From contig NIVC01004882.1 in the NCBI GenBank assembly GCA_002269645.1, positions 1-32,455 of the forward strand: a stretch of DNA of 32,455 nucleotides, read 5' to 3'. The notes beneath the pieces are model-generated. The model saw only the letters and a list, made by a program, of their open reading frames with translations. It had not been told where the DNA came from and did no database searches. A program made the position numbers and the translations under genes. Numbering within the stretch: position 1 is the first letter of the stretch; each line of letters opens with the position of its first letter. This DNA is from Macrostomum lignano. Lineage: Eukaryota. Below are positions 5,613-29,101 of this stretch, piece after piece.

Positions 5613-8177
5613 ATGATGAAGCTTATATTGTTGATGCTACTAAGCCTTCTAATTTGTTCTGCATCAGGTGAACAGATGCCACGTTTTGTCTATTCTCAGT
5701 CTGCCAAGCTGCTTCTTGTCTGGAATGATGTTTGGGAAGCTGGAACACAGAACTCCATGGTTCTTCTTAGCTCAAACAGCAAAATCACACTCAGAATTCG
5801 AGTTGATGGCGTGGCCAGCGGATCCGGTCTCAAGCGAACTCTTTTGTATAGTTGCCCAACAAAGTCCTCGGTGGGTTCAATTAACTTGACATCTGTGACT
5901 ACTAGTCCAACATCACCGCTATGTAGCTCAGACATCGCATTCACACTGAGGGCCACAGCCACAAGTGACGAATTCGAACTGACAATGTCAAGTTCTTCTC
6001 TAACCTATTCCACCGTGTTTTCATCTAACGTGATCCTGACCGCAAAGGTGGAATATTCTGGTGGAGTTTTGATGTCCAACAACCTGACAATGTGGAACTT
6101 GGACCCTATCAGCGACTTTCCGGCAAGTTCGTCAAGTCCTAGCGGATATGATCGGCGCTTTCTCACAGAGAACTCAATTCTTCTGCTGACTCGAATGAAT
6201 TTAGGATCGGGAGAGTTCAACAGCACCGATTTTATAGACAACCGGCTAGTGTCTGCAGTGCAGTCTGCTCCAATGTTCTTCAGGCAGAAGCTGAATTTAG
6301 GCGCGATTTTACATCTTGATCCGAGTGGTTGTTCAAATGTTCAGTACGACCGTGCATACATGTTCACCACATACGACTCCAAGATAACTAGTGTCCAAAT
6401 GACTCGAATGAAGACTATGTACCTCGACCGAAAAACTGGGCAGCTTTGGTATTCGAGGTGTCAGTTGCACCATGCAGTCCATCAGTTATATTTGGATAGA
6501 GGATCTCCTTCCGCAATCGGCATTTGCTTGTCAGTTTCCTTCTCAGGCGATGTTGTGCCATACGCAAAGATTAGTGCCGTAAGAGAGCGCATTCTTAGCT
6601 CAGATTTTTCTTATTCGACCTGTTCTGAACCTCGGAGTGGAAACTGTATGCTAGTGCCAGACACCGAGCAAAACGTCACCATCTATTCAAGCATGGACAA
6701 CACTCCGTTGGTGTGCCCGATTGTCTGCGCTGATTCAGCAACTTCGTTCACATTTTATCAAAATGGTCAGAAGCTGATACCAGCTTCTTCTGACTGGAGC
6801 GACTTTGGAGCGCAAGGTGTTCGGATTGCGAGAACTTCGAACATCATTGAGTTTTCCAAAGATGTCACGTCAAGCCAGGCCGGTGAGTACAGGTGTATCG
6901 CTGGGGGCGCCAGCTTTACCTACTATGTTTCGGTTGTCTCAATGCCAACATTCTCAGCGAGTATTGGTGGTCAAACCGCCACTGTACCCTCAAAGGTGTT
7001 CGCCATGCAGGGTGAGAGTCTGTCCTACAGCTGTGGAGTAACATACTCGGGTCTCAGCTCAACAGTGTCGTTGCAGCCTCTGTTCTTTCTGCCCTCCGTG
7101 TCCAGTAGCGTTTTGACATGGACTGAGCAAAGTGTGGCGAGTTTTAATAATTTTGTCAGTCCCAGTGGCAGTTCAGCCGTCAGTATCAGCACGCCAGCAG
7201 TTGGAGCTGGAGTTCAGCTGATGAATGTCTCAATTCAAAGTGTACCACCTCAGCATCCAAGTTTTGGTTACAATTTTACTCACAGATTCTTGTGCAATGC
7301 CACAGTGTCAGGAACCGATGCAGCAAACTTGGGAATGTCCAGCTATGGCACACAAAGTGGCGGTGACATTGTGTATGTCCCTCGACCAACAAAGGAGAAC
7401 TTCGTTCTAGGTGAAAATAATGACTGTGCAACACAAAAGTGTCACCTTGGAAACGGTGCGACGTTCAATTTCGCTCTTAGTCGTGAGTACTCGTCCTACT
7501 TGAATTATATTGGAGTGGATGTGGATTTGTTCCTTCGCATCGACAATCTTCTACTGACTGACGTTAAGATTCTCATGAGCAGCAACGTTTCAATCATTAG
7601 GTCGAACTGGACAAGCATCAGTTACGAGATATTGCCGATCACGGATGAAGCAGTTCGAACTGAGCTGCAGAAGCGAAGCAGCCTGACTCCGGTGTACAAC
7701 TTTCGGTATAGAAATGGGTCCGAAATGGGCAATGCGAAAATTCAGAAGGGTCGATATGGATCACCGACTGTCGCTCTCGGTTCAAAAGACTGTCGTACAG
7801 ATCCGTTGTGTTTTTACTCGACTGACTTTGATGCCTCTGGCAGCTTGAGCTTCCTTTCCGTCACTCTGGACTTCAAAAAACCGCAGCCGCCACTGTCGAC
7901 CGCCAACATGACAATAATGATAGTGGTTATTGTCGTTTGTGTTGTGCTAATCATTGTCTTGATTGTACTTGTTGTCTACTTTGCCAAGCGCGAACCGGCA
8001 AAGAGTTACGCCCTGGAGGAGAAGGAGCTGGAGCAGGGGCGCAATCCAAATGCGGAGGCTAAAGATGAAGAGTTCAAAGAGTATGTGCGCCAGTCAGAGG
8101 CTCCGGGGATGAGGGGAGACGACATTCAGATGCACGGCACAGCTTATGATAATTCCAGTTTTATGTACGGTGAGTAA
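5613..8177 (+). CDS. Gene A main exon: type I transmembrane Ig-superfamily cell-surface protein with an L1/neuroglian-like juxtamembrane tail
   Basis: 854-aa ORF. Signal peptide MMKLILLMLLSLLICSASG. Ig-like domain with LVCP...FYQNG...QAGEYRC (about 6660-6941). Second Ig-like domain with GESLSYSC...HRFLCNAT. TM helix IMIVVIVVCVVLIIVLIVLVVYF. Tail KREPAKSYALEEKELEQGRNPNAEAKDEEFKEY. Colinear with B and C, with conserved cysteines. Probably spliced at 8169/8170. Confidence 0.9.
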   Translation: MMKLILLMLLSLLICSASGEQMPRFVYSQSAKLLLVWNDVWEAGTQNSMVLLSSNSKITLRIRVDGVASGSGLKRTLLYSCPTKSSVGSINLTSVTTSPTSPLCSSDIAFTLRATATSDEFELTMSSSSLTYSTVFSSNVILTAKVEYSGGVLMSNNLTMWNLDPISDFPASSSSPSGYDRRFLTENSILLLTRMNLGSGEFNSTDFIDNRLVSAVQSAPMFFRQKLNLGAILHLDPSGCSNVQYDRAYMFTTYDSKITSVQMTRMKTMYLDRKTGQLWYSRCQLHHAVHQLYLDRGSPSAIGICLSVSFSGDVVPYAKISAVRERILSSDFSYSTCSEPRSGNCMLVPDTEQNVTIYSSMDNTPLVCPIVCADSATSFTFYQNGQKLIPASSDWSDFGAQGVRIARTSNIIEFSKDVTSSQAGEYRCIAGGASFTYYVSVVSMPTFSASIGGQTATVPSKVFAMQGESLSYSCGVTYSGLSSTVSLQPLFFLPSVSSSVLTWTEQSVASFNNFVSPSGSSAVSISTPAVGAGVQLMNVSIQSVPPQHPSFGYNFTHRFLCNATVSGTDAANLGMSSYGTQSGGDIVYVPRPTKENFVLGENNDCATQKCHLGNGATFNFALSREYSSYLNYIGVDVDLFLRIDNLLLTDVKILMSSNVSIIRSNWTSISYEILPITDEAVRTELQKRSSLTPVYNFRYRNGSEMGNAKIQKGRYGSPTVALGSKDCRTDPLCFYSTDFDASGSLSFLSVTLDFKKPQPPLSTANMTIMIVVIVVCVVLIIVLIVLVVYFAKREPAKSYALEEKELEQGRNPNAEAKDEEFKEYVRQSEAPGMRGDDIQMHGTAYDNSSFMYGE

Positions 8178-8284
8178 AATCTTTTACTTTGTTTTGTTAA
8201 CCTAATATTCGTATTCTACTACTAAAATTAATTTATGAGTAGTCACAATCGCAGCTAGACGTGGCTAAAATAATTAATTTCCAG

Positions 8285-8355
8285 AGAGCGTAGAACCTGA
8301 CCAAGCAGTGGCCGCCCCAGAGAACATTCAGGTGGAGCAGACTGATCAGGTGTGA
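8285..8355 (+). CDS. Candidate terminal coding exon of gene A (ESVEPDQAVAAPENIQVEQTDQV*)
   Basis: Donor ACG|GTGAGT at 8169/8170, a 115-nt AT-rich intron, acceptor AATTTCCAG| at 8284. The phase-1 join gives an open 23-codon GC-richer exon ending in TGA at 8353-8355; the spliced product is 875 aa. Confidence 0.7.
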
Positions 8356-9857
8356 TTTCAGCTTTGACTTGACGTGTATCAACATTTGCTGCAGACTTGG
8401 TTGCTAAATTACGAGCTATTTGATTTTTTGTCGCCTTATTAATATTGTAGATGCTTTCATTCAATTTTTAATTCAGAATTTCAAAAAATAGCATTGATCT
8501 CCACTTCTTGTACAGCCTAAGGCTGTGGCTTTCTCCAAATCTTGACCAAACTTTTTATTTCTTCTGCTGCGATTATACTGCTATTATAGTGCTGTTAACA
8601 TTGAATAATTTGTAATTAGTTGTTTTTTATTAATTATAACCTTTACTGAAATGCTGTGTATTTAACATTCGTTGTTTTTGTTTCTACTATGGCTTTAACT
8701 CGATATTTAAAATATTTGAATCTCTTTTCTGTTGAATTGCCAAAATTTTATGGTCTGAATTTCAACAGCTTACAATGTGATCTCTGGCACTTTGCCAGTT
8801 TAAACCAGTGAGACGAAGTCAAGGCAGTTGGCACGAGAGGCGCAGGTTCGAGCCTGGCCCTATTGTACGAGTATTCGAGCGTATTTATTAACTTTAATTT
8901 ACCGGACTAAAAGCCGAATAAAAACCTTGGAGACTTAAAAGCGAGAAAAAAAAATCAATACGCGCTTGGCGGGTCAGCGACAGCCCGCACCGCATTAAAA
9001 AACCGCCACCCAGGCCGCGGGCACGTGACCAAGGCCCGGCCCACCACCCCCGCACCAACGCACAAGAGCCACGCCCCACTGGTTTAACACCCAACCAAGC
9101 TACGCCCGGTCGGACCAATCAGTTGGGTCCACTCGATCAATCATTTTTCTGCCTTGGCTTTAAGCGCTCATTTTCTAACCGTCGTGTAAAGCTTTCCTGT
9201 TGGGCTGCATTTTTAAAATGCAGTTTTATTGTTGGACTGTGATTAAATAAAAACAATTCAAATCACACTGATTTTGATAATCTCACTTTTTTTGCTTTTT
9301 GTTATTCCCGATTTCAAATCAAGTATTTTTTACTTATTCATACATAAACTTCACTAACCAATGAGTCTCAATCAGTACGATTTAGATTTGATATAACGCA
9401 CTATTTTTTTAAACAAACTGACTGAATTGAACTATTGGCTGTACCTGATTTTTGACCTGATATATGTCTAGATATAGTCTATAGCGAGTATTAAAATGAC
9501 TCATATTCAAGTGCCTTTTTTCCTAAACCGGATTCAATGCTTAAAAATTGTAATCGGAATATATTATATCAAATAAATTTGCCATATCGGTGCTCATCAA
9601 GGAGCATTGGTCCAGTAAATGACATCAAACTTCTGAAAATATTTTTATATATTTTTTTGAAATCCCAAATCGCTTCAAGATGTTTTGGCAAGAATGGAAC
9701 CCTGTAGCTTAGCAAAAATATTCCTTCGTTTAAAGTTTCAATTTATGATGGTTGTAAGTCCTGGAGGTCTTACTTACGTCAATTCATCCCCATTTTACCT
9801 TTGGCATTGTCGAATAGTTTCCTGGGTCGACAAACTTCTCGTCTGGAGATAAGAAAA

Positions 9858-10142
9858 GGGCTGTAGCCCAGTGGTTCGAGCGTCGGACTCACGACTGAAA
9901 GGTCGGGGGTTCGATTATTGACCCAACTCAAAACAATTTGTGTCCTTAAGCAAGACACTTAACTCTGCATTGCTTCAGTTCTCCCAACTGTAAAATGGGT
10001 GCAAACATTAGCTGGGGACAATTGAGGCTGTGTGTGGCGACCCCCAGTCCTTGGGCTGAACAGCAGTACGCAGCCTTCAGATGCGCCTGCACATCAGATG
10101 CACAGATGCACATCTGGCCGTTGCAATATTGATTATTAATTA
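9858..10142 (+). mobile_element. tRNA-derived CORE-type SINE
   Basis: Pol III A box TAGCCCAGTGG (9864-9874) and B box GGTTCGATT (9908-9916), followed by TGTGTCCTTAAGCAAGACACTTAAC...CTTCAGTTCTCCCAACTGTAAAATGGG (9939-9999), which resembles the MIR/CORE domain. AT-rich tail. Confidence 0.75.
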
Positions 10143-10164
10143 GAGGAGTAACTTCTCTCCGTTA

Positions 10165-10839
10165 CAACAACAACAACAAAGTACACTGGATAGTCTCTGG
10201 TGTCACAGGGCGCGTCTCAAGGCTAGAGTGCAAACATAGGCCGCTCCGCCGTCAGAGTCCGGGGCGCCGGCGTCAGCCAGCAGGCAGTCGACGAAACGCC
10301 GAGTGCGCGCCTGTCCTCGCCGGTAGGGTGCCTGCAGCGTGAGCAGCAGCACCTCCTGCACCGGCTGTGGGCAGTACGACTCGGCGCGGATGATATGACC
10401 TGCCAGCTGGAGTCGCCGACGGCGCAGCAGGTCACTTGGACGGGCCAGATCGAGTCGAGAGACTCGATCAAGATCAATTCAAGATCAGCTCATCGCTGAT
10501 CTTGAAGGCGGTGCGCAGCAGGCCAGCGTGCGCCGCGTCGACTTGATGTTCGAGCGAGTCGAGTCTCGGCGTTGTAAAGCAGGACGGTTTCGACTACCGC
10601 CTGGAACAGCGCCGCCCTCTGGCGGTCCGGAAGGGCCTCAGACTGCAGGATCGCCCTCACAGAGCGGAAGGCAGCCCAGGCAAGCCCGCGGCGACGACGC
10701 AGATCCTCGCGTACATCGGGGACCAGACCACCGAGGTAGACGAACTTCTGACATCGCGGAAGTTCCGTTGCCTGTCCGTCAGCGCCTCGGCATAGGATAG
10801 CAGCCTCGATGTCGTCCGGCACGCACAGCACGACGGTCT
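10165..10839 (-). mobile_element. 5'-truncated RTE-clade non-LTR retrotransposon (frameshifted C-terminal ORF fragment)
   Basis: Minus-strand peptides FVYLGG...RRRRGLAWAAF...VETVLLYNAET and DLLRRRRLQLAGHIIRAE...RRAL*, a (TTG)n 3' tail, and a 9-bp TSD TCTCCGTTA at 10156-10164 and 10840-10848. Confidence 0.9.
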
Positions 10840-11371
10840 TCTCCGTTAATAAGCTATAAAGACCTCAAGTTCTTCCACTCTTTTATGTCCATGGACGATT
10901 TCTTTCTCGATCCAACTGTACTTACGACAAAGAGAGAAACTGGCGTAATACTGATCTTACACAGCAATTTAACTCACCATAGAACTTACAGCAGTTTAGA
11001 GCAGACCCCCCCAGGTGAGAAATCGGCAATTTGGTAACTGAAAATAAGCAACGTGTAATATACAGACGAATTGTAATACTTGAAGTATACTCCGCACTTT
11101 TGTAATGATAGCAGTCAACCAATTTTTTGGCTTCCTCATCGAAAAATTCAGTAAAGCCAATCTTAGCCACGAAAAAATCTCGTAGATACGCTCGTATAGG
11201 AAATAATATGCATTTATTGTTGACTGCATCGCTATTCGAAACATGATTATGAATTGAGCTTTCACGAGATTTGGAAGGAAACTTAAGGCTTACTGGCAGC
11301 CTTCTTTGTAAGTGTTCGATCTGACTCCCTAATGAGATACGAACAATTACGGCAATCATATTGTTATGATT

Positions 11372-11520
11372 GTCAGCCAGTCGACGAAAGGCCGAGTGCG
11401 CGCGTGTCGTCAGCCGTAGCACCTAGCTGTTGCACCGGTTGTTAGTTGATGTGATCGATAGCGCAACAGGTCGCTTAGACAGTTGAGCAGGCCGGTGGGG
11501 CGACACAGTGCCGTGCTGAC
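11372..11520 (-). mobile_element. Older degenerate fragment of the same RTE family
   Basis: GTCAGCCAG..TCGACGAAAGGCCGAGTGCGCGC...GCACCGG...GCGCAACAGGTCGCTTAGAC aligns by eye to 10272-10440. Confidence 0.65.
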
Positions 11521-12639
11521 AGTATGTCAAGTTAGTGTTTATACGGGTATTACGTCAGCCGAATGTGATCGGTGGTACACTGCAAAAGTACTCATTTGCC
11601 AGCGACATCCATATAGACGTTGGAAGCCGTTTTTTTTTGTATGGCAGTGCCGCTCTATGTATTTCGCTCATCGCCTGTGTTGCACGCGCAAGCTTGTCAG
11701 TGTTGTAAGAACAATAAGAATCAATGAGTCCATTAGTGCTTGCAGATTCTTGTAAGCATGCTACTTCATCTATTGGTACATTGTGTACGGAATGTACTTG
11801 CACTCAAGAATTTTTCAACAATTGTACATGTAAAGTTAGAGTCAGCGATTGAATGGTATAAATTATTTAATCGTCTTTATTGTAGATAAGCTATTCTACG
11901 TAGTCGAGCCATTAGCTTCAACAATTGTTCACCATGGACTTGGATTTTCATTCAAGACTTTTGTCAAGTAGCTAAAGAGACATTTTAATTTCAAGTAATG
12001 GAAATGAAGTCAAAATGGTATTTCACTATACCGTGGCTTGTCATGCAACTGTGGAAAACTTTTCGTAACGTAAAATACTGTTACCGGTTTTAAATCGTTT
12101 TTATAAACTTCCTTCTGGCATAACAAATTTTCTAAGAAGTCTGACATTTACATCATATAAGTGAATTTTCATTTGTTATATTTTCTCTATAATAATTCTT
12201 TTAATCTAAGACATCATTCCATTTTTATTTTAAAAATGCATCGGCACGAATTTAAAGCTTGCGCCTTTGGCACACTGCTATGTAGCTAGACCCGAATCGT
12301 GTAGTTGCAGCAAAAACGGTCGAAATCTGAATCAATCTTCTGCTTTAGTTGCTTCTATAACTACCTGCAGTTCGTCACGGTATTTGTAAGTAATAACGTT
12401 TCTTTTTTCGATATATTATTAATTTAGATGTAACGTGCACGCAAATATTTAGCTCAATATTTGTGCTGTAGAGATAGTTATTCTATTGCCAAACTAAAAT
12501 TGAGTTCAGTAAAAACTTTAATTAGCGAATCTTAGTGAAATAACTGCAGTTGGCTTTACTATTAAGCTTGCAATAATCGAATTATAGGGTGCCAATATTT
12601 CAATGCATATTTCACTCATGTCCATCCAATGTCCAGATT

Positions 12640-15156
12640 ATGGCCTTCTTGGCGCTATTCTTCCTGGCGCTGGTCTCCGGTTGCACGCTCGCCACCCAGC
12701 AGATGCCGCGGTTCCAGTTCTCACCGTCCAGCAAGGTGTTGCTTTCCTGGAGCGACACCTGGGAGGTCGGATCGTCCAACATGCTGTCGATTCTCACCGA
12801 GGGCAAGCACATCAACATTCAGGTGTCCGTGAGCGGCGATCGCGGCGAAAGTGGCCTAAAAAGAGTTCTAATTTACGAGTGCCCGCAATCCCAGGCCCAA
12901 ATGATTGACATGGACACTCTCCAATCGAGCTTGTCTCCCGAACATCGATGCCCGAATACCATTCCATTCACTGTACAGGCGGGCAACTCCGAAAACCATT
13001 TTCAACTGAAGATGAAAGCCTCAGAGGTGCACTATACCCAGGTGGCTAGCAGGAGAGTGAAACTCGTTGTGCGGGTCGAATGGTCTGGCGGGGCAATCCA
13101 GTCCAATCCGCTCTTTCTGTACAACTTTGACCCACTTGGCGCATTTAGCGTTGGAAAGATGGGAGCATTGGATTTAAAATTTCTTACCCCTGCCGCGATT
13201 GAGCTGATGACCAGGTTGAACTATTCCAGCCCACTTGACGACCAGTTTCCAGCTGTACCCTTCATTGAATCGTCAATTTCAAGCTTTGTCAAAAACTCAC
13301 CGCAGTTCGTCAGGAGCAAAATAACACTAGGCTCAAGCCTGTACTTTGATGCAGGCTCCTGCTTGCACAATCAACTGGGAAAGGCCACGCTGTTTACAAG
13401 CTACTACTCCAAATTTGACTTGCGACATCAAAAGCTTCAAAAAATAATGCACCTGGATGTAGAGAGCGGCTATTTAGACTTTTCTGCTTGCGGTTTAAAA
13501 CAGGAGATTACCTCATTTTATCATGAAAAGAAGCCGCAGTATACCATTGGAATCTGCACCATCATTTCGTTCTCAGGAGAATCTGAACCCTACTTAAAAA
13601 TTCAGGCAGCAGATCAGCGCTATTCAATTGACAAAGTCCATTACTCCGGATGTCCCATATGGTCTACAGCCTGCAAAGTGGCACCAAATGCTAAGAAAAC
13701 TTTGACCATAATGGCCGGCATGGACAACACCGCCCTCGTCTGTCCCATTCTGTGCAGCGATAAAAGCCAGACGTATCAATTTTTCAGAGACGGCAACCCA
13801 CTTTATGCGTCCCAATTAGAGGAGTGGACAGTCATAGATGGCATTCGGGTGTCGAGAACTGGCAACATCATCGAGTTTACACCTTCCGTCTCAAGTGCTC
13901 ATTCCGGGATATACAAATGTGATGCTGGATCGGAACACTTTTTTGAGTTCAACGTCACTGTGGTCTCGATGCCGCACTTTGCTGTGACCTACTCTTCTGC
14001 AGCCAGTGGAATTCCAAGCTCTGAAAGTTCGGGTCTGTTGCCTGAGAAGGTGTTCGCGATGGAGGGCGAATCTCTGTTCTACAGCTGTACAGTGATGTTC
14101 TCTGGATTGAAGTCGGTCACAGTGGAGCCAACGTTCTACATGCCAATGGTCAGTAACGGCAAGGTGAACTGGGACCGTCTGACAGATGAGGCATTTCGTC
14201 AAAAGTTTTCAAATGGAGACAGTTGGATGAGCGTGACTACGACCTCAACTTCGACTTCAAGTAAAACTTTGACAATGGACGTGATTCGCGTTCCCCCAGC
14301 TAATCCGTCACTGGGCACCAACTTCAGTCATCGATTTGAATGCAATGCTTCTCTTAATCAGTTTGAGTCTGTTTCACAGGTGGGCATGTCAGAGTATCGT
14401 AATCAAACGGGTGCCGATGTCTTTTTTCTAAATCGCCTGACGAAGGACAGTTTTCTCATAAACCCAAACAACAATTGTAGCGTTCAGAAATGCAGCGTCT
14501 CGAATGGCGCCAAGTTCGAATTTGCTCTTTCGGAAAGCACCGCAGCCTACCTCCGGGACGTCGGGGTCGAGGTTTCTGCTTACTTCATGTTGGACGATCT
14601 TCTTCTTGAAAATGTGAAGTCCTTGTTTGTGAAAGACGCTTCTGCCATCAGATTTGACGCTAAAACTTTTACTCTGACTTACAAAGTTTTGCCAATATCT
14701 CAGGAAGGCGTTTTGAATGAGCTGCAGAAACGAAAAAACCTTACAGCCGTTTACAATTTCCGCTATCAGCCAAAAACGGCTTTGACAAACCTTCGACACA
14801 ACAAAAGTGCTTACGGCAGTCCAAGCGTCGCTCTCGGCCAAAGAGACTGCCGGGCGGACAAGTTATGCTTTTACTCCACCGACTTTGATTTATCTAATGG
14901 GCTTGAATTTCTTCGAGTTGACCTGGCCTTTCTAGATACACCATTACCCGAGCCTGGAGTCGCTTCTACTCGTACTTCGGGTGTGATTGTCAGAGTGGCC
15001 ATCGCTGCCAGTGTGGCTTTGATTGTTGGCCTGGTGGCAGCTTACCTCATGACCAGGACGCCTGAAAGGGCTTACCAAGTTGAGGAGAAAGAGAAGATGG
15101 GCACAAAGCAGATGCTGAACGCTTCCATTGCGTCCATTTACCTAGAGCTGTCGTGA
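12640..15156 (+). CDS. Gene B: intronless type I transmembrane Ig-superfamily protein with a short 34-aa tail (838 aa)
   Basis: The first ATG is at 12640 (the ORF-track GTG start is not a eukaryotic start). Signal peptide MAFLALFFLALVSGCTLA. Ig motifs LVCP...FFRDG...HSGIYKC and GESLFYSC...HRFECNAS. TM GVIVRVAIAASVALIVGLVAAYLM. Tail has deletions relative to C. The ORF is intact. Confidence 0.88.
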   Translation: MAFLALFFLALVSGCTLATQQMPRFQFSPSSKVLLSWSDTWEVGSSNMLSILTEGKHINIQVSVSGDRGESGLKRVLIYECPQSQAQMIDMDTLQSSLSPEHRCPNTIPFTVQAGNSENHFQLKMKASEVHYTQVASRRVKLVVRVEWSGGAIQSNPLFLYNFDPLGAFSVGKMGALDLKFLTPAAIELMTRLNYSSPLDDQFPAVPFIESSISSFVKNSPQFVRSKITLGSSLYFDAGSCLHNQLGKATLFTSYYSKFDLRHQKLQKIMHLDVESGYLDFSACGLKQEITSFYHEKKPQYTIGICTIISFSGESEPYLKIQAADQRYSIDKVHYSGCPIWSTACKVAPNAKKTLTIMAGMDNTALVCPILCSDKSQTYQFFRDGNPLYASQLEEWTVIDGIRVSRTGNIIEFTPSVSSAHSGIYKCDAGSEHFFEFNVTVVSMPHFAVTYSSAASGIPSSESSGLLPEKVFAMEGESLFYSCTVMFSGLKSVTVEPTFYMPMVSNGKVNWDRLTDEAFRQKFSNGDSWMSVTTTSTSTSSKTLTMDVIRVPPANPSLGTNFSHRFECNASLNQFESVSQVGMSEYRNQTGADVFFLNRLTKDSFLINPNNNCSVQKCSVSNGAKFEFALSESTAAYLRDVGVEVSAYFMLDDLLLENVKSLFVKDASAIRFDAKTFTLTYKVLPISQEGVLNELQKRKNLTAVYNFRYQPKTALTNLRHNKSAYGSPSVALGQRDCRADKLCFYSTDFDLSNGLEFLRVDLAFLDTPLPEPGVASTRTSGVIVRVAIAASVALIVGLVAAYLMTRTPERAYQVEEKEKMGTKQMLNASIASIYLELS

Positions 15157-17224
15157 TTGAGATATGACACATCGACAGACAGCACAGAAAATAATGCATG
15201 CATCGTTTAATACTGTTTTTCTATTTAAGTCTTTATGCCAGGAGTGTTTCTGAGACCGTGCAAATATGTTAAAATATCTTAGTAATTGGAGCTGGTGTTT
15301 TAGAATAGGTACTCCAAAAATTTCCTACTTTTTCATAAAAAGTTAACTAGACCCCGAATTAGAAGACAAACTGTAATAACGAGCACAATTACAAGCGTAC
15401 TCGTAAGTTCCACAGTACAGGTGCTGCTTGTTGTGTCTTTTATACTCTGAAAGATACTTACAGACGCTTCTGTGTTCGGTACTTTTTAAATCTGCGAGTA
15501 TATCATACAATCGAATTATTAAGTAAGTTTTTGCTTTCATTTTTCGAAGGCTACTCTCTGTAAAATTCATCATTATTGCCATCACGCGACTCATGTGGAA
15601 GTCCTACGAATATTTGCAACCGTGGACAACTGATGTAGAAGGACTTCAGTTGTACATGATTGCGATACAAAATAGCGTTGCTTGTCCGCCAGCTCGTATT
15701 TTACTAAAGACAAAAAGAATTAACCAGTAACTATTACTATATTTATATCACTAATTCAGCCGATGACCTAAATGTTATTAAACTCTAGCTATGCACGCAA
15801 CTCTGAAATAATAAATGTTTAATGCAAGTATTATGTTCTATGATTAACATGTAAAAGTTCAATTACGAGTACACACTATAACTATTAGTTATGTCCTTTC
15901 CAACCTTCCCCAACCTACTCAACCTACATATGGAGTTTCAAGGAAGAAAGTCAATCTATGGCTAGATGTGACCACACAGACAGAATGCTCAATCAGTCTA
16001 TGTCTACATGTATGACTCCGAAACGCATGCGCGTGCACACTACTTTTTCGGTGAAAACGCTCAAAGTAATGCCGAGGAAACTGATAGAGCATCATGTTTA
16101 ATAGTTAAAGAAAACTGGAAAGAAATCGGCTCATATCAAGTATGCTAAGAAAGACAAAACTAACTCACTACATTGAAATAAAGCGCACTCTTGCATCTTT
16201 ACTGTCGATGGCTTGCACCAATATCAAATGGTGTAAAATTTAAAATGTCAAAGTGTAAAATGGGAACGTGATAGATAGACAGGAAGAGCATTTAGAAACT
16301 GGGCAGTCATTAGGGAGCATGAACCAGAAACCTTTAAGCATGAGCTTGCTTGCATCATGATTAACTTCTTGCATACCTCTCTATGAAATTATTGTAATCA
16401 TCTGGCAGATCGGCAAGATCTTTCGGCAAAATTTTGTCACAAGACAATTTGACACTCATTGTTTGTCTCTGAGAACGACTTGGCTAGCAAGAATACGAGT
16501 AAAGGTTCAGACCTCAGCCTGTTGCTCAAACAGTCTGCTGTCAATGGCATATACGCAAGCTATCTGAGACTAAGCTGACGTGCTAAAATTTGCTTCTGCT
16601 TAAAACTCTACGATGATCGTTACGGTTACTCGAATTCCTTCATCAGAAAAATAGTCTATGCGCCTATCAATTTTTTGATTGACGCAGTTTTCAGCTTAAA
16701 ATTAGCCAACTGTGTAAGTTCTGTGATTATGAACGGTCATCTGTGACCTTCTCTCTATTTATGTTTTCTTTTAAAGATAAACTTCCTAATTCAGTTGGAA
16801 AAGCTTTTTCCAGAATTCATGAAAATTAGAGATTCGATAAGAATCACTTCAACTGAAAATTCATGACCAGCCAAGTAGAAGGCCAGCTGCTTCGGGTAGC
16901 TGCTTGGAGAAGATTTATTTTTAAGATATCACCAGGGTCTTGCTGTGAACTTTTCTTCGCCATAATTACTGAATACTGTGAAGGTATAAAAGTATTTAAT
17001 GATAGGAAGAAATAACCAGTAAACACAATGTTTACGAGTATAACAACCATATAACTAAGGTGCTTCTTTCTGTTGATCCTGAAGCAAGTAGCCAACTAAT
17101 TCTGCTAACTATTTTGCCGTCAAAAATGTAAAAAGGAAATCTCATTTGAGCCATTACGAGCTAGGTGTTGGCTGCAGGTGTTTGTAACACAGTCAGATAG
17201 CAAATATTTGATTAATAATTACTA

Positions 17225-17400
17225 CATATATACTATACTACCACATATACTAAATGCCCAAGATCTGTTTGTTTGTCTTTAAGGCTCTAGACATTGAACC
17301 GATTGACCAATTTTGATCGCGTTTTCGCCAAAAGATCTGTAATTATCTGGAAGGAAGACAGTTTAAATTTCTTTAATCTGTTTCAATGCTACATGTATTA
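17225..17400 (+). mobile_element. Helitron-like 5' terminal fragment
   Basis: TATACTA repeats then TATACTAAATGCCCAAGATCTGTTTGTTTGTC, the same architecture as the minus-strand ends at 264, 1488 and 2684. The end coordinate is uncertain. Confidence 0.3.
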
Positions 17401-18579
17401 AATATTTGAAAACTGAGTTTTCCAATGCTTTCAATAGGAGGCCAAACAAGGTTGAATTGTTGACTGACTGAATTCGTATTCCGATAACGATTGCATTACG
17501 AGCTTTTTAAATATTCTTTTTTAGGTGAAGGCTGCAGTGTGCCAAGCATTGCGCGTGCACTCTAGTGAGATAAATCAGCAAGTGCATTTTAAAAGTAAAA
17601 TTGAAATTATTGAAGGATGTACAACATTATGTACATCTGGTGGTGCTAATCTGGTTGAGCAGCGCTAATTTGGGGGAGCGGTGCTAATCTGACTTATGAG
17701 AAAAGTAATAAATATGTATAAGAGGATTGCAAATCAAATTTAAATTGCGAGTTGCAAAGATTTCAAATGATTTCGATCTAATGCAATCGTTACTCTCTGA
17801 GTAAGGTGTGTTAGACGCGCCGGGGGTGCCGCTGTACATATCGCTGTACTTTGGCGGGGGTTGAGGTGTGGGGTGTTGGCCGCGCGGGCCAGCTTAAAGC
17901 CTCTGCACCCGGCCCGGCTTGTCTCCGTCCGCCATTTCTCAATTTTTTTTATTCTCTTTTTTACGAACCAATGAATATTAACTCGTTTAATCTAATAAAT
18001 AAACGCTTCGCTTGATCCACTGGGATCCGCTTTCTCGGCCGCTGCCTGCTTTTCGCAACTGATTTGTCTCGTTTGGCTCCTTCCGGCGTGTTTAATGTAA
18101 AGCATTGAGATTTGTGGCCATCTGCTCAGGGATTGTGTGAAACAGTGCTGGTGAACCATTGTGTCGTGCCGTAGCAATAAGGTCGTCCATTATAAGAGAG
18201 CGCTTAGTTGAGCACAAAAAAAACGCGACTTGAGGTGATAGCCAAACTGGCCTTTATATTATTAAGAAACCACGTAAGAAACCAAGACGGCACGTGCCGC
18301 CTATAATATAGCGCAGTCAAACATTTCTAACTGTAGCCTAGGTACAACGTGCCGCGTGCACGCTACGTAACATTGGCAATGAGTAAATATTGCGTACACA
18401 AAGTAAGTCAGTGAAAGTTAATGAGCTGAGCAAGGCGCGGCGCCACACATAGCTAAACTGCTGGTGAACCATTGCAATTTTTTACTAAAAGCTATTTTTA
18501 AAAAGAAGAAAACTGAGCGAAAGAAAGAACGAAAAAAAGAATCACCGTGTCAAACAAAAAGAAGCACCCTGTCGAACAT

Positions 18580-19174
18580 ACAAGACTCATTGGGAATTGC
18601 TAAGATGTCAAGACCGATGGAGGAATTGCTAAGAGTCAAGGCTTACGGCAGAAATTTCTGAGATGTCGAGGATGGAGGGGATAGCTCAAATACTGTGATT
18701 CTTAGGAAGAATTGCTGCGAGTTCAAGGTTTATTTGGAAAATCGCTGCGATAACAAGTCTCACGGGTGGGGTTGTTAGATTGTCAAGGTTCATTGGGAAA
18801 TTCCTTTGCTGTCAAGGCTCATGGGATGATTTCTGAAATGCTGTGGCTGTTAAGGGGAATTTCTGAGATATCAAGGGTCTCCAGTAGATGTGGTTGCTGA
18901 GATATTGAGGCTCACGGGGAATTGCTGAGATGAGAATATTCATTGGGGGATTGTTGTGGCTCATGGGGCAGAATGGCTGAAATCTTGTAACCTTCAGCGG
19001 GGTTTTGGATAGGGTGGGTTATGGTGAGGGTTCCGTTTAGGAATGTTAGCGTAAGTGTAAAGGTTCAACCGTAAAAGAATTAGCCTGTCTACCAAAAAAG
19101 ACTAATAAGACACTTGCTCAGATTTTCAAAGCTCATAGAGGGAATGACTCAGTTGCCAAGGCTCATGAGGGGAC
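18580..19174. repeat. Degenerate ~30-bp minisatellite, approximate consensus GCTGAGATGTCAAGGCTCATGGGGAATT
   Basis: Recurrent AAGGCTCAT / GGAATTGCTGAGAT motifs; the same family occurs at ~24430-24830. Confidence 0.7.
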
Positions 19175-20499
19175 TGTAGTGACTGACGCGAAACAGAGAT
19201 AATTTGCTGAATAAGACTTCGGCCCCGACTTGGGCATTGGATTGCGATACATATTGCTGTGATGGGGCTCAAGGGCTCGGTCCTTTCGTGCCCCTTTCCC
19301 AGACCCGGGTTCGCGCACTGACCCTGGCTGCGGTCCTCCACTGACACGCGTACGACGCAGAGCTGCTTGGGTTGGGACCGGCGTACGACGCACTTAATCC
19401 CTCTAAGGTGCCTAGTACAGATGCAGACCCAAATGACTTGCAAATGGGAAGGCTCACCAGCCGCGATTTCGGTCGTACAACTCGGGAACAGCGCCGACAG
19501 AGCAGTGGGAGTATCGATATTCTTTAATTGTATTTGTCGGACAATTCGGACACTTAATAGTGAAGTACAGGCTGTTTGCTTCCCGGATTAGGCCCTTGCG
19601 GATTACCTTATGACTCGTGCCTCTTCAGTGGGAAGTTCTCTCAACTCTCAGTAGCGTAGGTAGTGCTGCCACCAGTTCCTTCAGGTCTCGGCCTTCGATG
19701 AGGTGAGCTTCCCGTCGGAACGAAATAAACAAGTCAACGAACTCAGCACAGCGTGCAGATTTGCAGATTAATGAACAAGGCGTCCTGATCAGCAGCTCCC
19801 CGCCGGGCTCAGGGGTGGCTGGGAAGGCAGTGTTAGCCTCCCTTAGGCTTGGGCTTTAGTGGGGTTTCAGTCAGACCAGTACAAACGGATTCAGTACGCA
19901 AAGGGCACTTAGTTAGACACTGACGCGCACGGGATCTTAGTGAATTCTCCGCAGATAAGAAGCCATTCCTTGACGGAAACAAGGGAGAGGGGTCCTATTT
20001 ATAACCGGGAAACACCCACGCACAAGACCTCGTGACCTCGTTCTATTTTTAGAACTGACGTCACTTGAGGGTCTCCCGGCAGAGTGCACATGGCTGTGAC
20101 TCAGTTGCTATTTTTAGCAACATGAGTCACTCCTCTCTTTAGAGAAGGGAGGGGGCCGAAAGCATGTGACTCTTCCGGTAAACAGGGCCAACAAGTGCAG
20201 TAAACATGTTTACTGCACTTTAGGACTCAAAGAACAGATCGAGGATCTGTTATGTGACTCGCTCACATGACAGGGGAAAGAAAGACCGAGCGAAACAGAG
20301 ACAGTCCACAGCAGAGAAGCTGAGGGCTGAGAAACAAGGGGCAAAACGGGAAAAAACGAGGGAAGGGAGCAGCAACAGACAGACAAAAGGAGGGAGGCGG
20401 GAAGCTGACCAGCGGCAGACAGCAACCCAGGGCGAGGGCGAGGGCAAGGGCGACTGCTGACGAAGTGCGACGCCTAACACTAACTAGCGGATCACTACA
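19175..20499 (-). mobile_element. LTR-like segment (~1.3 kb)
   Basis: Bounded by the inverted termini TGTAGTGA...TCACTACA. Minus-strand TATAAATA at 20003-19996 with clustered enhancer-like motifs upstream of it. No matching TSD, PBS or PPT was found. Confidence 0.5.
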
Positions 20500-21351
20500 A
20501 TAGCAACCAACGCTGGCAAAATCACCGGGGAGCCACGGAGTCTCACGGGGGTCCGAAAAAATAGGCAGCAAACTAGGGGTTGAGGGCGCGGGATAAAGGC
20601 AGAAAAGGGGGCTTAGACAACAGCATGGGACACACATGAGCCGTACCAGCCAATCGCCGGGGGCGCAGCACGGCAGACTGGGACTGGCAGCCAATCACGA
20701 TCTATAGGGGCGGGGCAGCTAGGCTAACAAAATAATGGGGTGGGGTCGCACGCAAAGAATGGGGGGGTCGCACGCAGAGAATGGGGGTTGAATAACAGAC
20801 AAGGCCTAGGCAGAGAGGGGGGGCTACGCACGTGCAGAAGTGAAGGGGGTGAGTCAGAAAATATCTGAGGAGGGGGGAGAGGCCGGCCAGACTGGCCCGG
20901 CGTAGAATAGTGCACTCAACTCAAGTTACAATAACACATTCATGACAATATATTGAGACCCAACCTAACAGTTCGATACGAGTGAAACGTAAATCCAATT
21001 ACACGAACACCAACCTAGCGTGTACATCAGCTCAATGTGCAATTGGACTAAAATAGCCCGCGCAGTGACTGAGGGTGGCCGTGTATAACATCGTACCCAC
21101 GTGAACTTTTACAGTAAAATAAAAACGAGATTAAAAGCTATTTTAACAGTGAAAAATCATGCAGAAATTGGCAGTTCATAAATCAGTCCGAATCAAATTT
21201 GTCAGAAAGCAAAACTCAATCACGAAAGTCCGGTCTCGGGATTTTGCAGCTTCTTGGATGCGGGCGGTATTCAATTGGTGGCTCCGCCGCACCAGACTCG
21301 ATCCCCGTCGCAGCGCCAAAAGTCGCCGCAGACTGTCCGGTGCTTTCCTTC

Positions 21352-24345
<2,994 letters not shown>

Positions 24346-24429
24346 GAATGGTGGACTTTAGGCAGGGTTAGTTTAGGATTAGGTTAGGGTTATGGTTAAA
24401 CCATAAAAGGGTTTCCTTTTCGAAAATAA

Positions 24430-24830
24430 AAGACTCGTTGGTGGATTGCTAAGGGATCAAGGCTCATTTGGGAATTGCTGAGATGACAAAGCTCGGAGAG
24501 GGGGAATTATGGAATTCTGGGACTCTTGGGGAGATGTCAATAATATGTAAAAAGCTCAATATGAAAAAGCTCACATGGGAATCGCTGAAATGCTAAGGCT
24601 CACTGTGAATAGCTGAGATGTCCAAGGCTCATAAGAGAATTGCTGAAATTTCTGCCGAGATAAAATTCAATAAATGTCAATGTTCATTGGTTAATTGTTA
24701 TAATACTGTGGCTCATGGGGGAATAGCCGAAATACTGTGACTCGGCAGGGATAGGGTTGGGGTTCAATCATAAGTCTCATGTGGAATTTCCAAGCTGTGA
24801 ATTGCTAAGTGGTCAGGCCTTAGGGGTGGT
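24430..24830. repeat. Degenerate ~30-bp minisatellite, same family as 18580-19174
   Basis: AAGGCTCA / GAATTGCTGAGATG motifs, preceded by a degenerate TTAGG/TTAGGG tract at 24365-24395. Confidence 0.7.
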
Positions 24831-25481
24831 CAGGAGAAAGGAGAAGCAACCTCATCTCTGTTAATAAGCTACATTGTTTATAAAGGCATCAAGTTTTTCC
24901 ACTTTCGTCCAGTTCTTTCTATTCAACATTTATGTACGTACGGGATAAGTACGAGAGTTTCGCAAGATCTAAATGGAATTTAGTAAGACTGATCTTACAC
25001 AGGGCGCAAAGTTCTAACTTACGATTTGAGTTACCATTCAACTTACTTATCGTATAGCTCGTATGACTGCGTTGAGTTTTACAATATTTGGAAGCACTAA
25101 CTATGCACATTTTGTATTTAATAATCGAAAAATCAGCTGATCCGATTCTTTATCTTGCAAAAATTGTCTACGTGTAGGTCGAAGTGTCGAAGTAAATTTT
25201 AAAATTTGACCCTGCGATTTCTACGAGTAGCCAGAATTTCTAGCTACATCCGAAGTAAAAAAATCGGAGCTTTTGAACGGAATTTCGCACCTTCAAACCA
25301 GATTCCAATCAGATCTCTGCCTTAAGTTACATTGATTCTGCGTTTAGAGTCTTTGTTTGCGTATTTGTATATTTTTTACAATTGCTTTTCAGCCTAGAAA
25401 AATCGCTCATTGTTCAAAACTAAAGCAAAAACCAATTGTAAGGATTTTCGAAACCATGCACTAAAAATAGCGCAGTCTCCG

Positions 25482-25712
25482 CTCCTCCCTCTTCTCTCCT
25501 CTCCTCTCCTCTCCTCTCCTCTCCTCTCCTCTCCTCTCCTCTCTCCTCTCCTCTCCTCCCCTCTCCTCTCCTCTCCTCCCCTCTCCTCCCCTCTCCTCTC
25601 CTCTCCTCTCCTCCCCTCTCCTCCCTCTCCTCCCTCCCTCCCCTCTCCTCCCCTCTCCTCCCCTCTCTTCTCCTCTCCTCTCCTGTTCTCTCCTCTTCTC
25701 TCCTCTTCTTTT
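25482..25712 (+). repeat. (CTCCT)n polypyrimidine microsatellite
   Basis: Uninterrupted C/T run from 25482 to 25684, then a further pyrimidine run after a single G. Confidence 0.95.
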
Positions 25713-26378
25713 ATCTCATCTCTCCCGTTTTATCCACTCCGGCTTTACTATAGGTTTAATTAACAGCAAAATTTGACACATCACACTTTGTGTAGTCCTG
25801 ATAATTAAGTTGCTGACTTTGTACTCGTTTGTATCGAACCTACAGGTTTTCAATCGAAAAGTCGCACCAATTTCTAGTTAAATACTACACACATTGAGAA
25901 ATACTCAAATGCAATTTTTTATCAAACAAACGATCATACCTAAAGAAGGTATGCTGACGGTCTGCTGATGCCTGTACATTACACAGGTGGATGATGACGT
26001 TATAGGTCAGCCGAATGCTATCGATGCAAATCGAAAATACTCATTTGCTAGCGACAAACATATATATTGATTGCAAGTCGGTTTTTGTATGGGAGTGCTG
26101 CGCTACGGGTGACAGTTATTAATTCATCACCTGTTGCTCGAGCGAGTTCGTTAGAGCCCAGGTCTGAAAGCTGTAAGAGCAAAGAGAATCAACGATTCCA
26201 TAGATTATCTTACATACAGGTTTTCAAAAGCATGTTAGATACTTCATTTTGCGTACATTGGTACATCCACAAGGATCTCTTCCATTAAGTTGTAGAAATA
26301 ATTTACCCATAGTTATATCTGATCTGTAATAAATTATTTTTTATTGAAAATGAAAGATTTTTCTGCTTTAGTATTGCA

Positions 26379-28179
26379 CTAGCAATCTAGTGCGGCCCCC
26401 CTTCGGGGCGCCCAATAAGAAAGGAGCAAAAATAGTTCATGGAAAACAATAAAAAAGCACATTTTCTTAAACACCATTCCTTCTTCACTTTAAAAAATCA
26501 CCTTATTCGTGTAAAATTGTCACGGACAAAGATGTTTGCGAAGTGAAAGAATCACTTTTTCTCTAAAATTAACAAACAAACAACAAAATATAGCTTCCCC
26601 TAAATAGAAAATATTCCCAAGACAGCAAGCACCCCCCTCCAAAAGTAAACAACCGCAGATAACAAGCATCCTCTAATGGTCATAGCAAGCATCACCCCAG
26701 ATAGCAAGCATTTGCAGATAGCAAGCATCCCCCAAATATTGTAGAAGTATCCACCCAGATAGGAAGCATCCTGCAGATAGCAAGCACCCCCCAAGATATT
26801 ATAGAAGCATCCTGCAGATAGCAAGCACCCCCAAGATATTATAGAAGCATCCTGCAGATAGCAAGCACCCCCAAGATATTATAGAAGCATCCTGCAGATA
26901 GCAAGCACCCCCCAGATATTATAGAAGCATCCTGCAGATAGCAAGCACCCCCAAGATATTATAGAAGCATCCTGCAGATAGCAAGCACCCCCCAGATATT
27001 ATAGAAGCATCCTGCAGATAGCAAGCACCCCCCCCCCAGATATTATAGAAGCATCCTGCAGATAGCAAGCACCCCCCAAGATATTATAGAAGCATCCTGC
27101 AGATAGCAAGCACCCCCCAAGATATTATAGAAGCATCCTGCAGATAGCAAGCACCCCCCCAGATATTATAGAAGCATCCTGCAGATAGCAAGCACCCCCC
27201 CAGATATTATAGAAGCATCCTGCAGATAGCAAGCACCCCCCAAGATATTATAGAAGCATCCTGCAGATAGCAAGCACCCCCCAAGATATTATAGAAGCAT
27301 CCTGCAGATAGCAAGCACCCCCCAGATATTATAGAAGCATCCTGCAGATAGCAAGCACCCCCCCCCCAGATATTATAGAAGCATCCTGCAGATAGCAAGC
27401 ACCCCCCAAGATATTATAGAAGCATCCTGCAGATAGCAAGCACCCCCCAAGATATTATAGAAGCATCCTGCAGATAGCAAGCACCCCCCCAGATATTATA
27501 GAAGCATCCTGCAGATAGCAAGCACCCCCCCAGATATTATAGAAGCATCCTGCAGATAGCAAGCACCCCCCAAGATATTATAGAAGCATCCTGCAGATAG
27601 CAAGCACCCCCCCCAGATATTATAGAAGCATCCTGCAGATAGCAAGCACCCCCCCAGATATTATAGAAGCATCCTGCAGATAGCAAGCACCCCCCAAGAT
27701 ATTATAGAAGCATCCTGCAGATAGCAAGCACCCCCCAAGATATTATAGAAGCATCCGCCCAAATAGCAAGCATCCTGCAGATAGCAAGAATCCCTAAATA
27801 GCAAGCATCCCTGGATAGAAAGAATCCCATACATGTAGCCAGTACCCCCCCTCCCAAATAGCAAGTATCCCCGCTCGAGAGCAAGCATCCTCCACATAGC
27901 AAGCATCCGCGAGACAGCAAGTAGCTAATGCAAATGTTACCTCCGCTAATGCAATAATCGCTTTCTCAGGTTGTGCAGCCATCCACGGCTCAGCGAGCGC
28001 AATAATCTCTTTTTTAGACAGCGCAAAAATCAGCTTCTCAGCTAGTGCAATAATCCTTTACTCATCAAGTCCAAAAATCGATGTCTCAGCTAGTTCAATA
28101 GCCCTTTCTAATCTAATCCTTGGCTTATCAAGCGTCAAATAGCTAAATTAGAATAAATTTGGGGGAAAAAGCTCTCAGA
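26379..28179 (-). mobile_element. Candidate non-autonomous Helitron carrying a satellite array
   Basis: Minus-strand 3' end is a GC hairpin with a GAA loop (GCGCCCCGAAGGGGGGCCGC) followed by CTAG|T at 26382-26378. Possible A|TC 5' end at 28180/28179. The segment is absent from the paralogous region upstream of gene B. The right boundary is tentative. Confidence 0.4.
26600..27920. repeat. 40-44-bp tandem satellite GATAGCAAGCA(C)5-10(A)AGATATTATAGAAGCATCCTGCA
   Basis: About 24 near-identical units from 26776 to ~27757 that differ only in the C run; degenerate ~20-bp monomers on both edges. Confidence 0.95.
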
Positions 28180-28658
28180 TGCATCAGTCAAAACGTAAAA
28201 ATTTTTGCCTGTTTTAATTCGTTTCTATAAACTTCTTGCTAGTACGATTATAACAGATTTTATTTTAAAAAACCACACTTTACACAATATACCTAAACTT
28301 TTATTAGTAATTTTTTCTAAATTATTTTTCTTACTTGATTCAAAAAACTTTTAATTTTTAATAAAAAAATGCATCAGCACGAATTCAAATTATTCGCCTC
28401 AAATACACTACCCTACAATATAGCTAGACCTTATTTGTGTAGTTGCAGCAACGGTGGAAATATAAATCAATCTTCTGCTTGTTACAGTTGCTTCTGGAAC
28501 TACCTCGAGTTTGCTATATTTTTGCAAGTAATAACTTTTATTTATTGTTAAAATATTAATTTCCTTTGCACGCGAATATCATGCCTTATGTATCTTTAGT
28601 TTGCATGTTAGAAATAGAAATGAATCTACGAGCGTAGTGCGTATGAAGTGATTGATAT

Positions 28659-28904
28659 GAGTCCCTGAGAATTGCCCGCCGAGTTTTTTCCCGCCGAGGT
28701 TTTCCTTCCCCCCCAAAAAAAAATATGCATTTGATATGCAGTTACTATAAAAACGTTTTGATCGTGTTAATCTCTTTATTAAGACTTACTATATGGGAAG
28801 GCAATGCAGACAAAACCAGCCGTGTGGCTAAATGCGCTGCAGGAAAAAAGCATTGCGGGCAAACCTCGGCGGGAAAAATCTCGGCGGGCAATTCTCGTGC
28901 TCCC
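28659..28904. mobile_element. MITE (246 bp, 9-bp TSD, possibly Mutator-type)
   Basis: 36-bp subterminal inverted repeats with one mismatch (28667-28702 and 28861-28896); direct repeat GATTGATAT at 28650-28658 and 28905-28913; absent upstream of gene B. Confidence 0.85.
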
Positions 28905-29101
28905 GATTGATATAAATGCGAGCATAAAGCATAAAGAGCTATTTAATCGCCAAACTAAAATTAAGTTCAGTAAAAACTCTATAATTAGCTAATCTTAGTG
29001 AAATAACTGTATTTGGCTTTCTATTAAGCTTGCAATAATCGAATTATAGGGTGCCAATATTTCAATGCATATTTCACTCATGTCCATCCAATGTCCAGAT
29101 T

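Follow-up and report, generated by a model that had tools for sequence, protein, structure and literature searches.

A homogenized ectodomain-coding tract in two tandem genes for predicted IgCAM-like membrane proteins of Macrostomum lignano

The 32,455-bp stretch of DNA analyzed here (the window) is the entire contig NIVC01004882.1 of the Macrostomum lignano assembly Mlig_3_7 (GCA_002269645.1). It carries three tandem paralogs, A, B and C, as long open reading frames (ORFs) on the + strand, and a fourth, D, lies on an overlapping contig. B and C are 16.5 kb apart on the one contig, each with its own diverged exon 1/promoter region and 3′ flank, and a segment of 2.4–2.6 kb has been homogenized between the two loci. 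This state is best explained by repeated interlocus gene conversion, together with non-allelic recombination, in a tandem array of old origin, a reading whose probability we put at about 0.8. Feature coordinates are collected in Table 1 and refer to the window unless a contig is named.

A homogenized segment between diverged flanks

Self-BLASTN aligned 12476–15094 with 28937–31550 at 97.5% identity (56 mismatches and 3 gaps in 2621 columns). Within this match, B 12640–14940 and C 29102–31402 differ at 36 of 2301 nt and show no indel. The differences fall in 34 codons: 19 are synonymous, and 15 are non-synonymous, of which two have a double change, giving 19 + 17 nucleotides. The initial annotation of this DNA, which had counted about 36 nt manually with the same split and no indels, was exact. 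For the ectodomains the NG86 method gave a synonymous divergence (dS) of 0.038 and a non-synonymous divergence (dN) of 0.0096 (dN/dS 0.25), and 8 of 349 four-fold degenerate sites differ (2.3%). In a global alignment, identity per 100-nt window remains at 95–100% from about 12530 to 14930 and collapses on both sides, so that the sliding-window check proposed in that annotation bore out the tract. No difference between B and C was found in 12561–12663. Since the 79 intronic or leader nucleotides of this interval (12561–12639) are non-coding and identical in both copies, coding constraint is not the cause of the identity of the tract.

Divergence is 1.6% inside the tract versus 15–23% in the alignable islands of the flanks. 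Equality of flank divergence and ectodomain dS had been named earlier as the outcome that would speak against conversion; the flanks were found to be 4.5 to 7 times more diverged, and their Kimura two-parameter (K2P) distances are lower bounds, since most flank sequence is unalignable. In Fisher tests of four-fold sites against flanks, P was 1e-17 for the upstream side and 3e-9 for the downstream side. The segment picked by a two-breakpoint likelihood scan was B 12550–15130, with 48/2574 differences inside versus 138/704 outside (twice the log-likelihood difference, 254), a value reached by 0 of 200 permutations. An old duplication followed by homogenization of the ectodomain, as first proposed, agrees with the flank-to-dS ratio and with these formal tests. 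The flank identity of 65–85% given at that time applies to about a fifth of the spans concerned, the rest being unalignable; the collinear flank matches in self-BLASTN reached 71–86% identity at most.

The 5′ limit of the tract lies in a non-coding position. Intron 1 of C spans 28528–29098 (donor CAA/GTAAT, acceptor CAG/ATTATG), and the core tract begins at about 12559–12561 inside the intron, some 79 nt before the ATG and 75 nt before the acceptor. Upstream of it stands a shoulder of intermediate divergence, in which B matches the copy on contig L003 and C the copy on contig L002 (both introduced below) at 4 sites; locus identity is thus kept there. Further upstream the introns of B and C differ by about 325 nt in length.

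At the 3′ end, a second shoulder covers the stalk, the transmembrane helix and the juxtamembrane segment, with a divergence above that of the ectodomain (P = 7e-5) and below that of the 3′ flank (P = 0.03). The last difference of the core is at 14923 and a cluster begins at 14941, so the limits 12559–14940 first assigned to the tract are accurate for the low-divergence core. The rise in divergence reported at the stalk/transmembrane boundary corresponds to this cluster; the likelihood scan places the actual 3′ break at 15040–15135, at a 105-nt deletion private to B. Likewise, the tract covers the ectodomain entirely and is not confined to it, as it begins in intron 1, includes the signal peptide and extends fuzzily into the stalk and transmembrane segment. 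Outside the tract, the old divergence is seen in the promoter/exon 1 region, the more upstream portion of intron 1, the end of the tail and the 3′ untranslated region (UTR).

The tails do differ, as had been claimed, although largely through two in-frame deletions in B, of 105 nt and, further along the tail, of 12 nt. The 105-nt segment is present in window C and in the L002 and L003 copies. Both deletions are private to window B and to the protein P0005, whose only listing is in MetaClust, a different source database. Exact-sequence look-ups of B and P0005 returned no encoding contig, and P0005 matches no gene call recorded in the assemblies collection.

Repeated exchange among paralogs and subgenome copies

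Mlig_3_7 holds three subgenomes (S, L1 and L2) with a single-nucleotide divergence of 1.9–2.4% (PMC10733133). Four B/C-type copies, which are subgenome copies within one assembly, were compared: B_w and C_w of the window, C_L2 of contig L002 (NIVC01002676.1) and X_L3 of contig L003 (NIVC01002404.1). Their six pairwise ectodomain distances range from 1.56% to 2.96%. The smallest is that of B_w and C_w (1.56%), with B_w–X_L3 at 2.26% and C_w–C_L2 at 2.39%; sign-type tests of the closeness of B_w and C_w gave P = 0.07 and 0.004. The flanks are arranged by locus, B_w grouping with L003, and C_w with L002 and with the overlapping contig L001 (NIVC01001317.1), whereas in the tract B_w and C_w are the closest pair.

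The informative sites support three partitions. Ten sites and a 3-nt indel join B_w and C_w against C_L2 and X_L3, five join B_w and X_L3 against C_w and C_L2, and four join B_w with C_L2 and C_w with X_L3. Whatever the tree, 9 or more sites conflict with it, versus 0.31 expected from parallel mutation (P = 6e-11), and the stalk indel is common to B_w and C_L2, against C_w and X_L3. With three incompatible partitions and an indel shared across loci, the homogenization was not one event. The mosaic patterns require repeated exchange, part of which may stem from exchange or chimerism among subgenomes.

The arrangement on L003 bears on the same point. Positions 6451–12446 of this contig match window 9118–15094 at 96.9% identity, while 9837–13349 match window 28937–32455 at 96.0%. 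The 13.9-kb interval between B and C is missing, and one hybrid gene has the left flank of B and the right flank of C. The region 6451–13349 is best read as a B/C fusion from a non-allelic crossover in the homogenized tract, or as an assembly collapse at that place.

The upstream flank of B is 96.9% identical to L003 and the downstream flank of C 96–97.4% identical to L002 and L003. As the flanks are only about 3% apart between subgenome contigs, their rate of change is ordinary and not elevated. The same comparison dates the duplication: the B and C flanks are 17–27% apart, versus about 3% between L003 and the window, so the two copies long predate the split of the subgenomes. The tract gives a later date. 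With a dS of 0.038 between B and C and of 0.040–0.063 between subgenome copies, its timing is near the divergence of the subgenomes and not very recent. The conversion initially called recent is thus later than the duplication, and recent in that sense only.

B_w has 6 private sites and C_w 21, and B is central in the network of the four copies, B_w being the one window-type B gene among them; this hints at B as the donor of conversion.

Paralog D shares a shorter and older tract with B and C. Nucleotide identity between B and D is 86–97% over 14017–14320 and 40–57% outside 13690–14320, with a patchier zone of 70–87% from about 13690. In the tract of about 300 nt, the dS between B/C and D is 0.17, versus >1 elsewhere; the dS to A is saturated. 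All four B/C-type copies are at the same distance from D (24–26 differences in 300 nt), and the exchange with D therefore predates the homogenization of B and C. The GC content at third codon positions (GC3) of D falls to the level of B and C in this tract, which weakly suggests D as the recipient. Some C-private variants match D (the cluster 13812, 13816 and 13817 and the codon at 14449–14450), which is suggestive of import from D, with too few sites to claim it.

Taken in order, B and C are long-standing tandem duplicates of an intron-poor gene specific to Macrostomum. Their coding bodies would have been homogenized by non-reciprocal homologous repair, that is, by interlocus gene conversion or, equivalently, by a double exchange between misaligned copies. 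Such exchange would have stopped at breaks in homology, which on the 5′ side may be the intron 1 length difference of about 325 nt and on the 3′ side the 6-nt indel followed by the B-private deletion of 105 nt. Recurrent exchange in the array would account for four B/C-type copies that are mosaics of one another, and the single B/C fusion on one subgenome contig is the expected product of non-allelic crossing over within this tract. D holds an older tract of B/C-type sequence of about 300 nt, and the main homogenization dates to about the time when the three subgenomes of the neopolyploid diverged.

Several points weigh against this reading. All of the DNA was taken from a single assembly, made from an inbred neopolyploid line, and chimeric scaffolds make up about 36% of the length of Mlig_3_7 (PMC10733133). 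L003 could have its one gene because the assembly collapsed through the 2.6-kb repeat, and not through a real deletion. On L002 the identity to the window switches across the 41-nt satellite, which makes the pairing of C with B uncertain. The B–C distance is only modestly below the between-subgenome distances, and one ancient event with ordinary divergence and subgenome recombination could account for some of the mosaic. Homogenization does not extend to the whole family, since a tandem pair on a further contig, L004 (3102–6689 and 10001–12800; Mlig020049g1 and Mlig011430g1), is not homogenized and shows only patches of 72–79% identity; the pair provides the B/C tract with a negative control. 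Finally, no rise in GC3 was found in the tract (0.55 in B and C, 0.49 in A, 0.62 in D), and thus no signal of GC-biased conversion. Such a signature is a frequent correlate of conversion and not a defining feature.

One alternative is a single ancient homogenization before the subgenome split, with all later mosaicism produced by subgenome recombination or homeologous exchange together with chimerism, and none by continued conversion between B and C. It would fit the closeness of the B–C dS to the between-subgenome range, and the identity switch of L002 is compatible with chimerism. Nevertheless, B_w is nested in C-type diversity and has the shortest terminal branch (6 private sites versus 20–32), B_w and C_w are the closest pair and the stalk indel is common across loci. 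As a full account a single ancient event is quite unlikely; together with later subgenome recombination it remains a partial alternative for the mosaicism.

An artefact of assembly or polishing, with B/C or subgenome reads mixed in the consensus or homeologues falsely placed in tandem, is improbable. Mlig_3_7 is heavily chimeric (PMC10733133), the window overlaps another contig with differences that are indels only, C has a likely 1-nt indel error, and NIVC01001317.1 starts between B and C. Yet 36 clean substitutions remain, and three contigs that were assembled separately show the homogenized state, as does a protein listed from another source database. False tandem joining further predicts flanks about 2–3% apart and a second A upstream of C, neither of which was seen.

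A recent tandem duplication of the whole unit without conversion, with flanks that merely diverged faster through relaxed constraint, indels and repeat insertions, would suit flanks that are non-coding, indel-rich and broken by repeats. It is very improbable given that four-fold sites (2.3%) and the 79 intron nucleotides (0%) are as alike as the rest of the tract while flank islands differ by 15–23%, that the same flanks are only about 3% apart between subgenome contigs, and that the tract boundaries are sharp. Selection alone on codon usage, RNA or exonic regulatory elements is scarcely credible as what keeps the synonymous sites alike: the dN/dS of 0.25 does indicate purifying selection on the ectodomain, but within the same gene family dS is saturated to A and exceeds 1 to D outside the D tract, the intronic part is identical, and the mosaic sites and the fusion contig require physical exchange, so that the insufficiency of purifying selection asserted in the initial annotation is upheld.

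The encoded protein and its array

The gene product is, as far as profiles and a structural model suggest, a divergent membrane protein resembling immunoglobulin-type cell adhesion molecules (IgCAMs), without the sequence hallmarks of the L1/contactin family. A hidden Markov model search of 1.84 billion representatives returned 12 proteins, and all the full-length ones are from M. lignano. Several are named in UniProt as Ig-like, Bravo_FIGEY or Neurofascin/L1/NrCAM C-terminal domain proteins. In a collection of 5.8 billion proteins the B protein had one significant match, a hypothetical protein of M. lignano, whose 90% cluster includes P0003 (BOX15_Mlig003394g3). The one Ig_2/Ig_3 match that Pfam gave in A, B and C did not reach the gathering score (E 7e-4 to 0.06); tandem Ig domains were not recognized in the three proteins by sequence profiles, and no FN3 domain was detected. 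The sequence search of A, B and C against PDB returned only sub-threshold hits driven by the transmembrane segment. For the Bravo_FIGEY tail (PF13882), A scored E 0.042, below the cut-off, and C had no match; the L004 paralogs have precomputed PF13882 matches, and most of the equivalent segment is absent from B.

An AlphaFold2 model of B was calculated from a 21-sequence alignment and had a predicted local distance difference test score (pLDDT) of 80.7 and a predicted TM-score of 0.75, versus a pLDDT of only 42 from a 4-sequence alignment. The predicted layout is a signal peptide, a β-rich multidomain ectodomain, a disordered stalk (residues 770–782), a transmembrane helix (780–804) and a disordered tail. 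The best Foldseek matches of the model were the Ig arrays of contactin-2, axonin-1, Sidekick-2 and DCC (E 1e-14 to 1e-10), with target TM-scores of 0.5–0.58 for four-Ig fragments, at a sequence identity of 8–12% to any solved IgCAM. The model thus places the ectodomain among Ig-like β-sandwich arrays at the level of fold. As in L1, neurofascin and contactin, the predicted ectodomain is a chain of Ig-like β-sandwiches, and relatives have a PF13882 tail; unlike these IgCAMs, A, B and C show one weak sub-threshold Ig match and no detected FN3, and identity is 8–12%. The protein is accordingly modeled as a Macrostomum-restricted type I membrane protein with an Ig array and an L1-like tail, encoded by an intron-poor gene.

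Window 18416–32455 equals positions 1–14033 of L001, that is, the start of NIVC01001317.1 between B and C, with 0 substitutions and 25 indels. The duplication is a redundant, unmerged contig overlap in Mlig_3_7. In the window, a deletion of 1 nt lies in C some 10 codons ahead of the family stop (TGA 31723–31725; region about 31690–31834), by which its ORF extends to 31834 (927 aa). The deletion is absent from L001, L002 and L003 and probably reflects an indel error in the consensus. On the downstream side of C, at 3.7 kb, lies D, which is intact and encodes 889 aa; it had no match among the retrieved annotated proteins.

L002 lacks most of the satellite region (at about 9207–9830 of that contig), and across the 41-nt satellite its identity to the window falls from 99.6% to about 97%. 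This drop is a subgenome switch, either through real recombination or in a chimeric contig. In the interval between B and C, short ORF fragments of a decayed retroelement surround the RNase H remnant at about 21600–23500 on the − strand. No reverse transcriptase or integrase domain was detected in these pieces, and the adjoining ORF at 22360–23034 was matched by no profile. The GC-rich block around the retroelement, at 18–24 kb, is 99.6% identical to L002. Another GC-rich stretch, at 10–11 kb (57% GC), probably represents an inserted element. A direct repeat whose period is about 1.24 kb (7–1490 versus 1244–2685, 87% identity) stands at the left end of the contig (7–2685), and dispersed repeats of 66–89% identity occur in the A–B and C–D intergenic regions (window 9926–10087 and 10331–10689; L001 14790–14953 and 21970–22337). 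Scans of the window and loci for tRNA genes found none.

Table 1. Features of the B/C tract and its surroundings. K2P values of flank islands are lower bounds.
Feature	Position	Strand	Remarks
Core homogenized tract, copy B	12559–14940	+	Last ~80 nt of intron 1, signal peptide, whole ectodomain
Core homogenized tract, copy C	29021–31402	+	Offset +16462 from B; same alignment
5′ shoulder in B, intron 1	12476–12558	+	Partner C 28937–29020; 9 substitutions + 2 indels in ~83 nt; intermediate divergence
3′ shoulder in B: stalk, transmembrane helix, juxtamembrane segment	14941–15094	+	Partner C 31403–31550; 11 differences in 148 nt + 6-nt indel
C tail segment missing in B	31551–31655	+	105 nt (35 codons) of L1-like cytoplasmic tail; marks 3′ end of alignable high-identity tract
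B stretch with older conversion tract common to D	14017–14320	+	C counterpart 30479–30782; D = L001 16979–19648
Gene B coding sequence	12640–15156	+	838 aa; intact ORF; cytoplasmic tail shortened; from ORF and alignment
Gene C coding sequence	29102–31725	+	Stop as read in L001/L002/L003; annotated BOX15_Mlig003394g3 (P0003)
5′ exon of C, annotated	28423–28527	+	N-terminal extension of P0001/P0003 translates from here
Exon-1 homolog of B, outside tract	~12283–12388	+	74% identity to C exon 1 and surroundings; conserved GTAAGTAATAAC donor context
Flank island	11551–11657 / 26003–26105		K2P 0.21
Upstream flank island of B (promoter + exon-1 region)	12067–12425	+	Partner 28192–28562; 79/349 aligned nt differ; K2P 0.27; 32 gap columns
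Tail end + 3′ UTR/flank island of B	15098–15373	+	Partner 31656–31944; 40/264 aligned nt differ; K2P 0.17; 37 gap columns
Two short islands further downstream			K2P 0.12
Paralog A	5613–8177	+	854 aa; 40% amino-acid identity to B and C; no tract common with B/C
B–C intergenic interval	15157–29020	.	Absent from contig L003
RNase H remnant, retroelement-type (PF00075)	22061–22345	−	Only C-terminal part of domain recognizable
(TCTCC)n run	25476–25706		In B–C interval
41-nt satellite	26763–27772		In B–C interval; 24.6 copies; 330-nt higher-order period
Contig L002 (NIVC01002676.1)			C upstream interval at 99.6% identity, then gene + downstream flank ~1.5–2.5% diverged
Contig L003 (NIVC01002404.1)			A, B upstream flank (96.9%), single gene X (P0004, Mlig026651g1), C downstream flank (96%), D

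Relation to known systems and consequences

The closest described case is that of the clustered protocadherin genes of teleosts, in which regional gene conversion was found in fugu and zebrafish (PMC1852091). As there, the genes are tandem, have a single large exon and encode type I membrane proteins of adhesion type; part of the coding exon is homogenized among neighbors with synonymous near-identity while other parts have diverged; and the events are lineage-specific and repeated, with some clusters of the family unaffected. Unlike the teleost genes, B and C encode an Ig-array protein and not a cadherin, two to three genes are involved and not dozens, there is no rise in GC3, and the setting is a neopolyploid flatworm. 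The homogenized part also differs, being the whole ectodomain in B/C, and EC4–EC6 with the cytoplasmic part in protocadherins. Noonan et al. (2004), as cited in the teleost protocadherin paper, reportedly dealt with gene conversion in the protocadherin cluster.

The primate γ-globin genes are the classical example of interlocus conversion between tandem duplicates with diverged flanks. They have in common with B and C a high-identity tract between flanks of older divergence, ends at interruptions of homology, and a fusion/deletion haplotype by unequal crossover in the same tract; organism and gene family are different. At about 2.4–2.6 kb, the B/C tract is at the long end for metazoan conversion tracts and may sum several events. 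Interlocus conversion of tandem duplicates has been reviewed (PMC3966226). Literature searches on these gene identifiers and on gene conversion in M. lignano found nothing specific within the library covered. The tract is a new instance of a well-known process and would not surprise a specialist.

As a consequence of the exchange, B and C would show nearly the same extracellular surface, with a different promoter region and tail (B lacks 35 + 4 tail codons). It may be asked whether selection holds the limits of conversion, so that B, with a tail 39 codons shorter and its own promoter and exon 1, and C, with the full L1-like tail, form a functional pair; this is unlikely. If true, B and C must share a binding surface, for example as a signaling receptor and a tail-less decoy or modulator, or as co-recognizing homophilic partners, and recurrent conversion would keep their specificity matched while regulation and signaling diverge.

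The tract is a clean and quantifiable case of concerted evolution in a flatworm, in which the coding body of a putative receptor is exchanged and the promoter/exon 1 region and the tail evolve separately. In practice, most ectodomain probes, RNA interference triggers and short reads cannot separate B, C and their subgenome copies, and ectodomain gene trees will be misleading guides to orthology. Contigs of Mlig_3_7 are likely to break or collapse at the 2.6-kb repeat. The finding is thus of use for annotation and for the dating of duplicates in the M. lignano neopolyploid, where exchange between paralogs on the time scale of subgenome divergence matters for dating the genome duplication by the divergence of duplicates.

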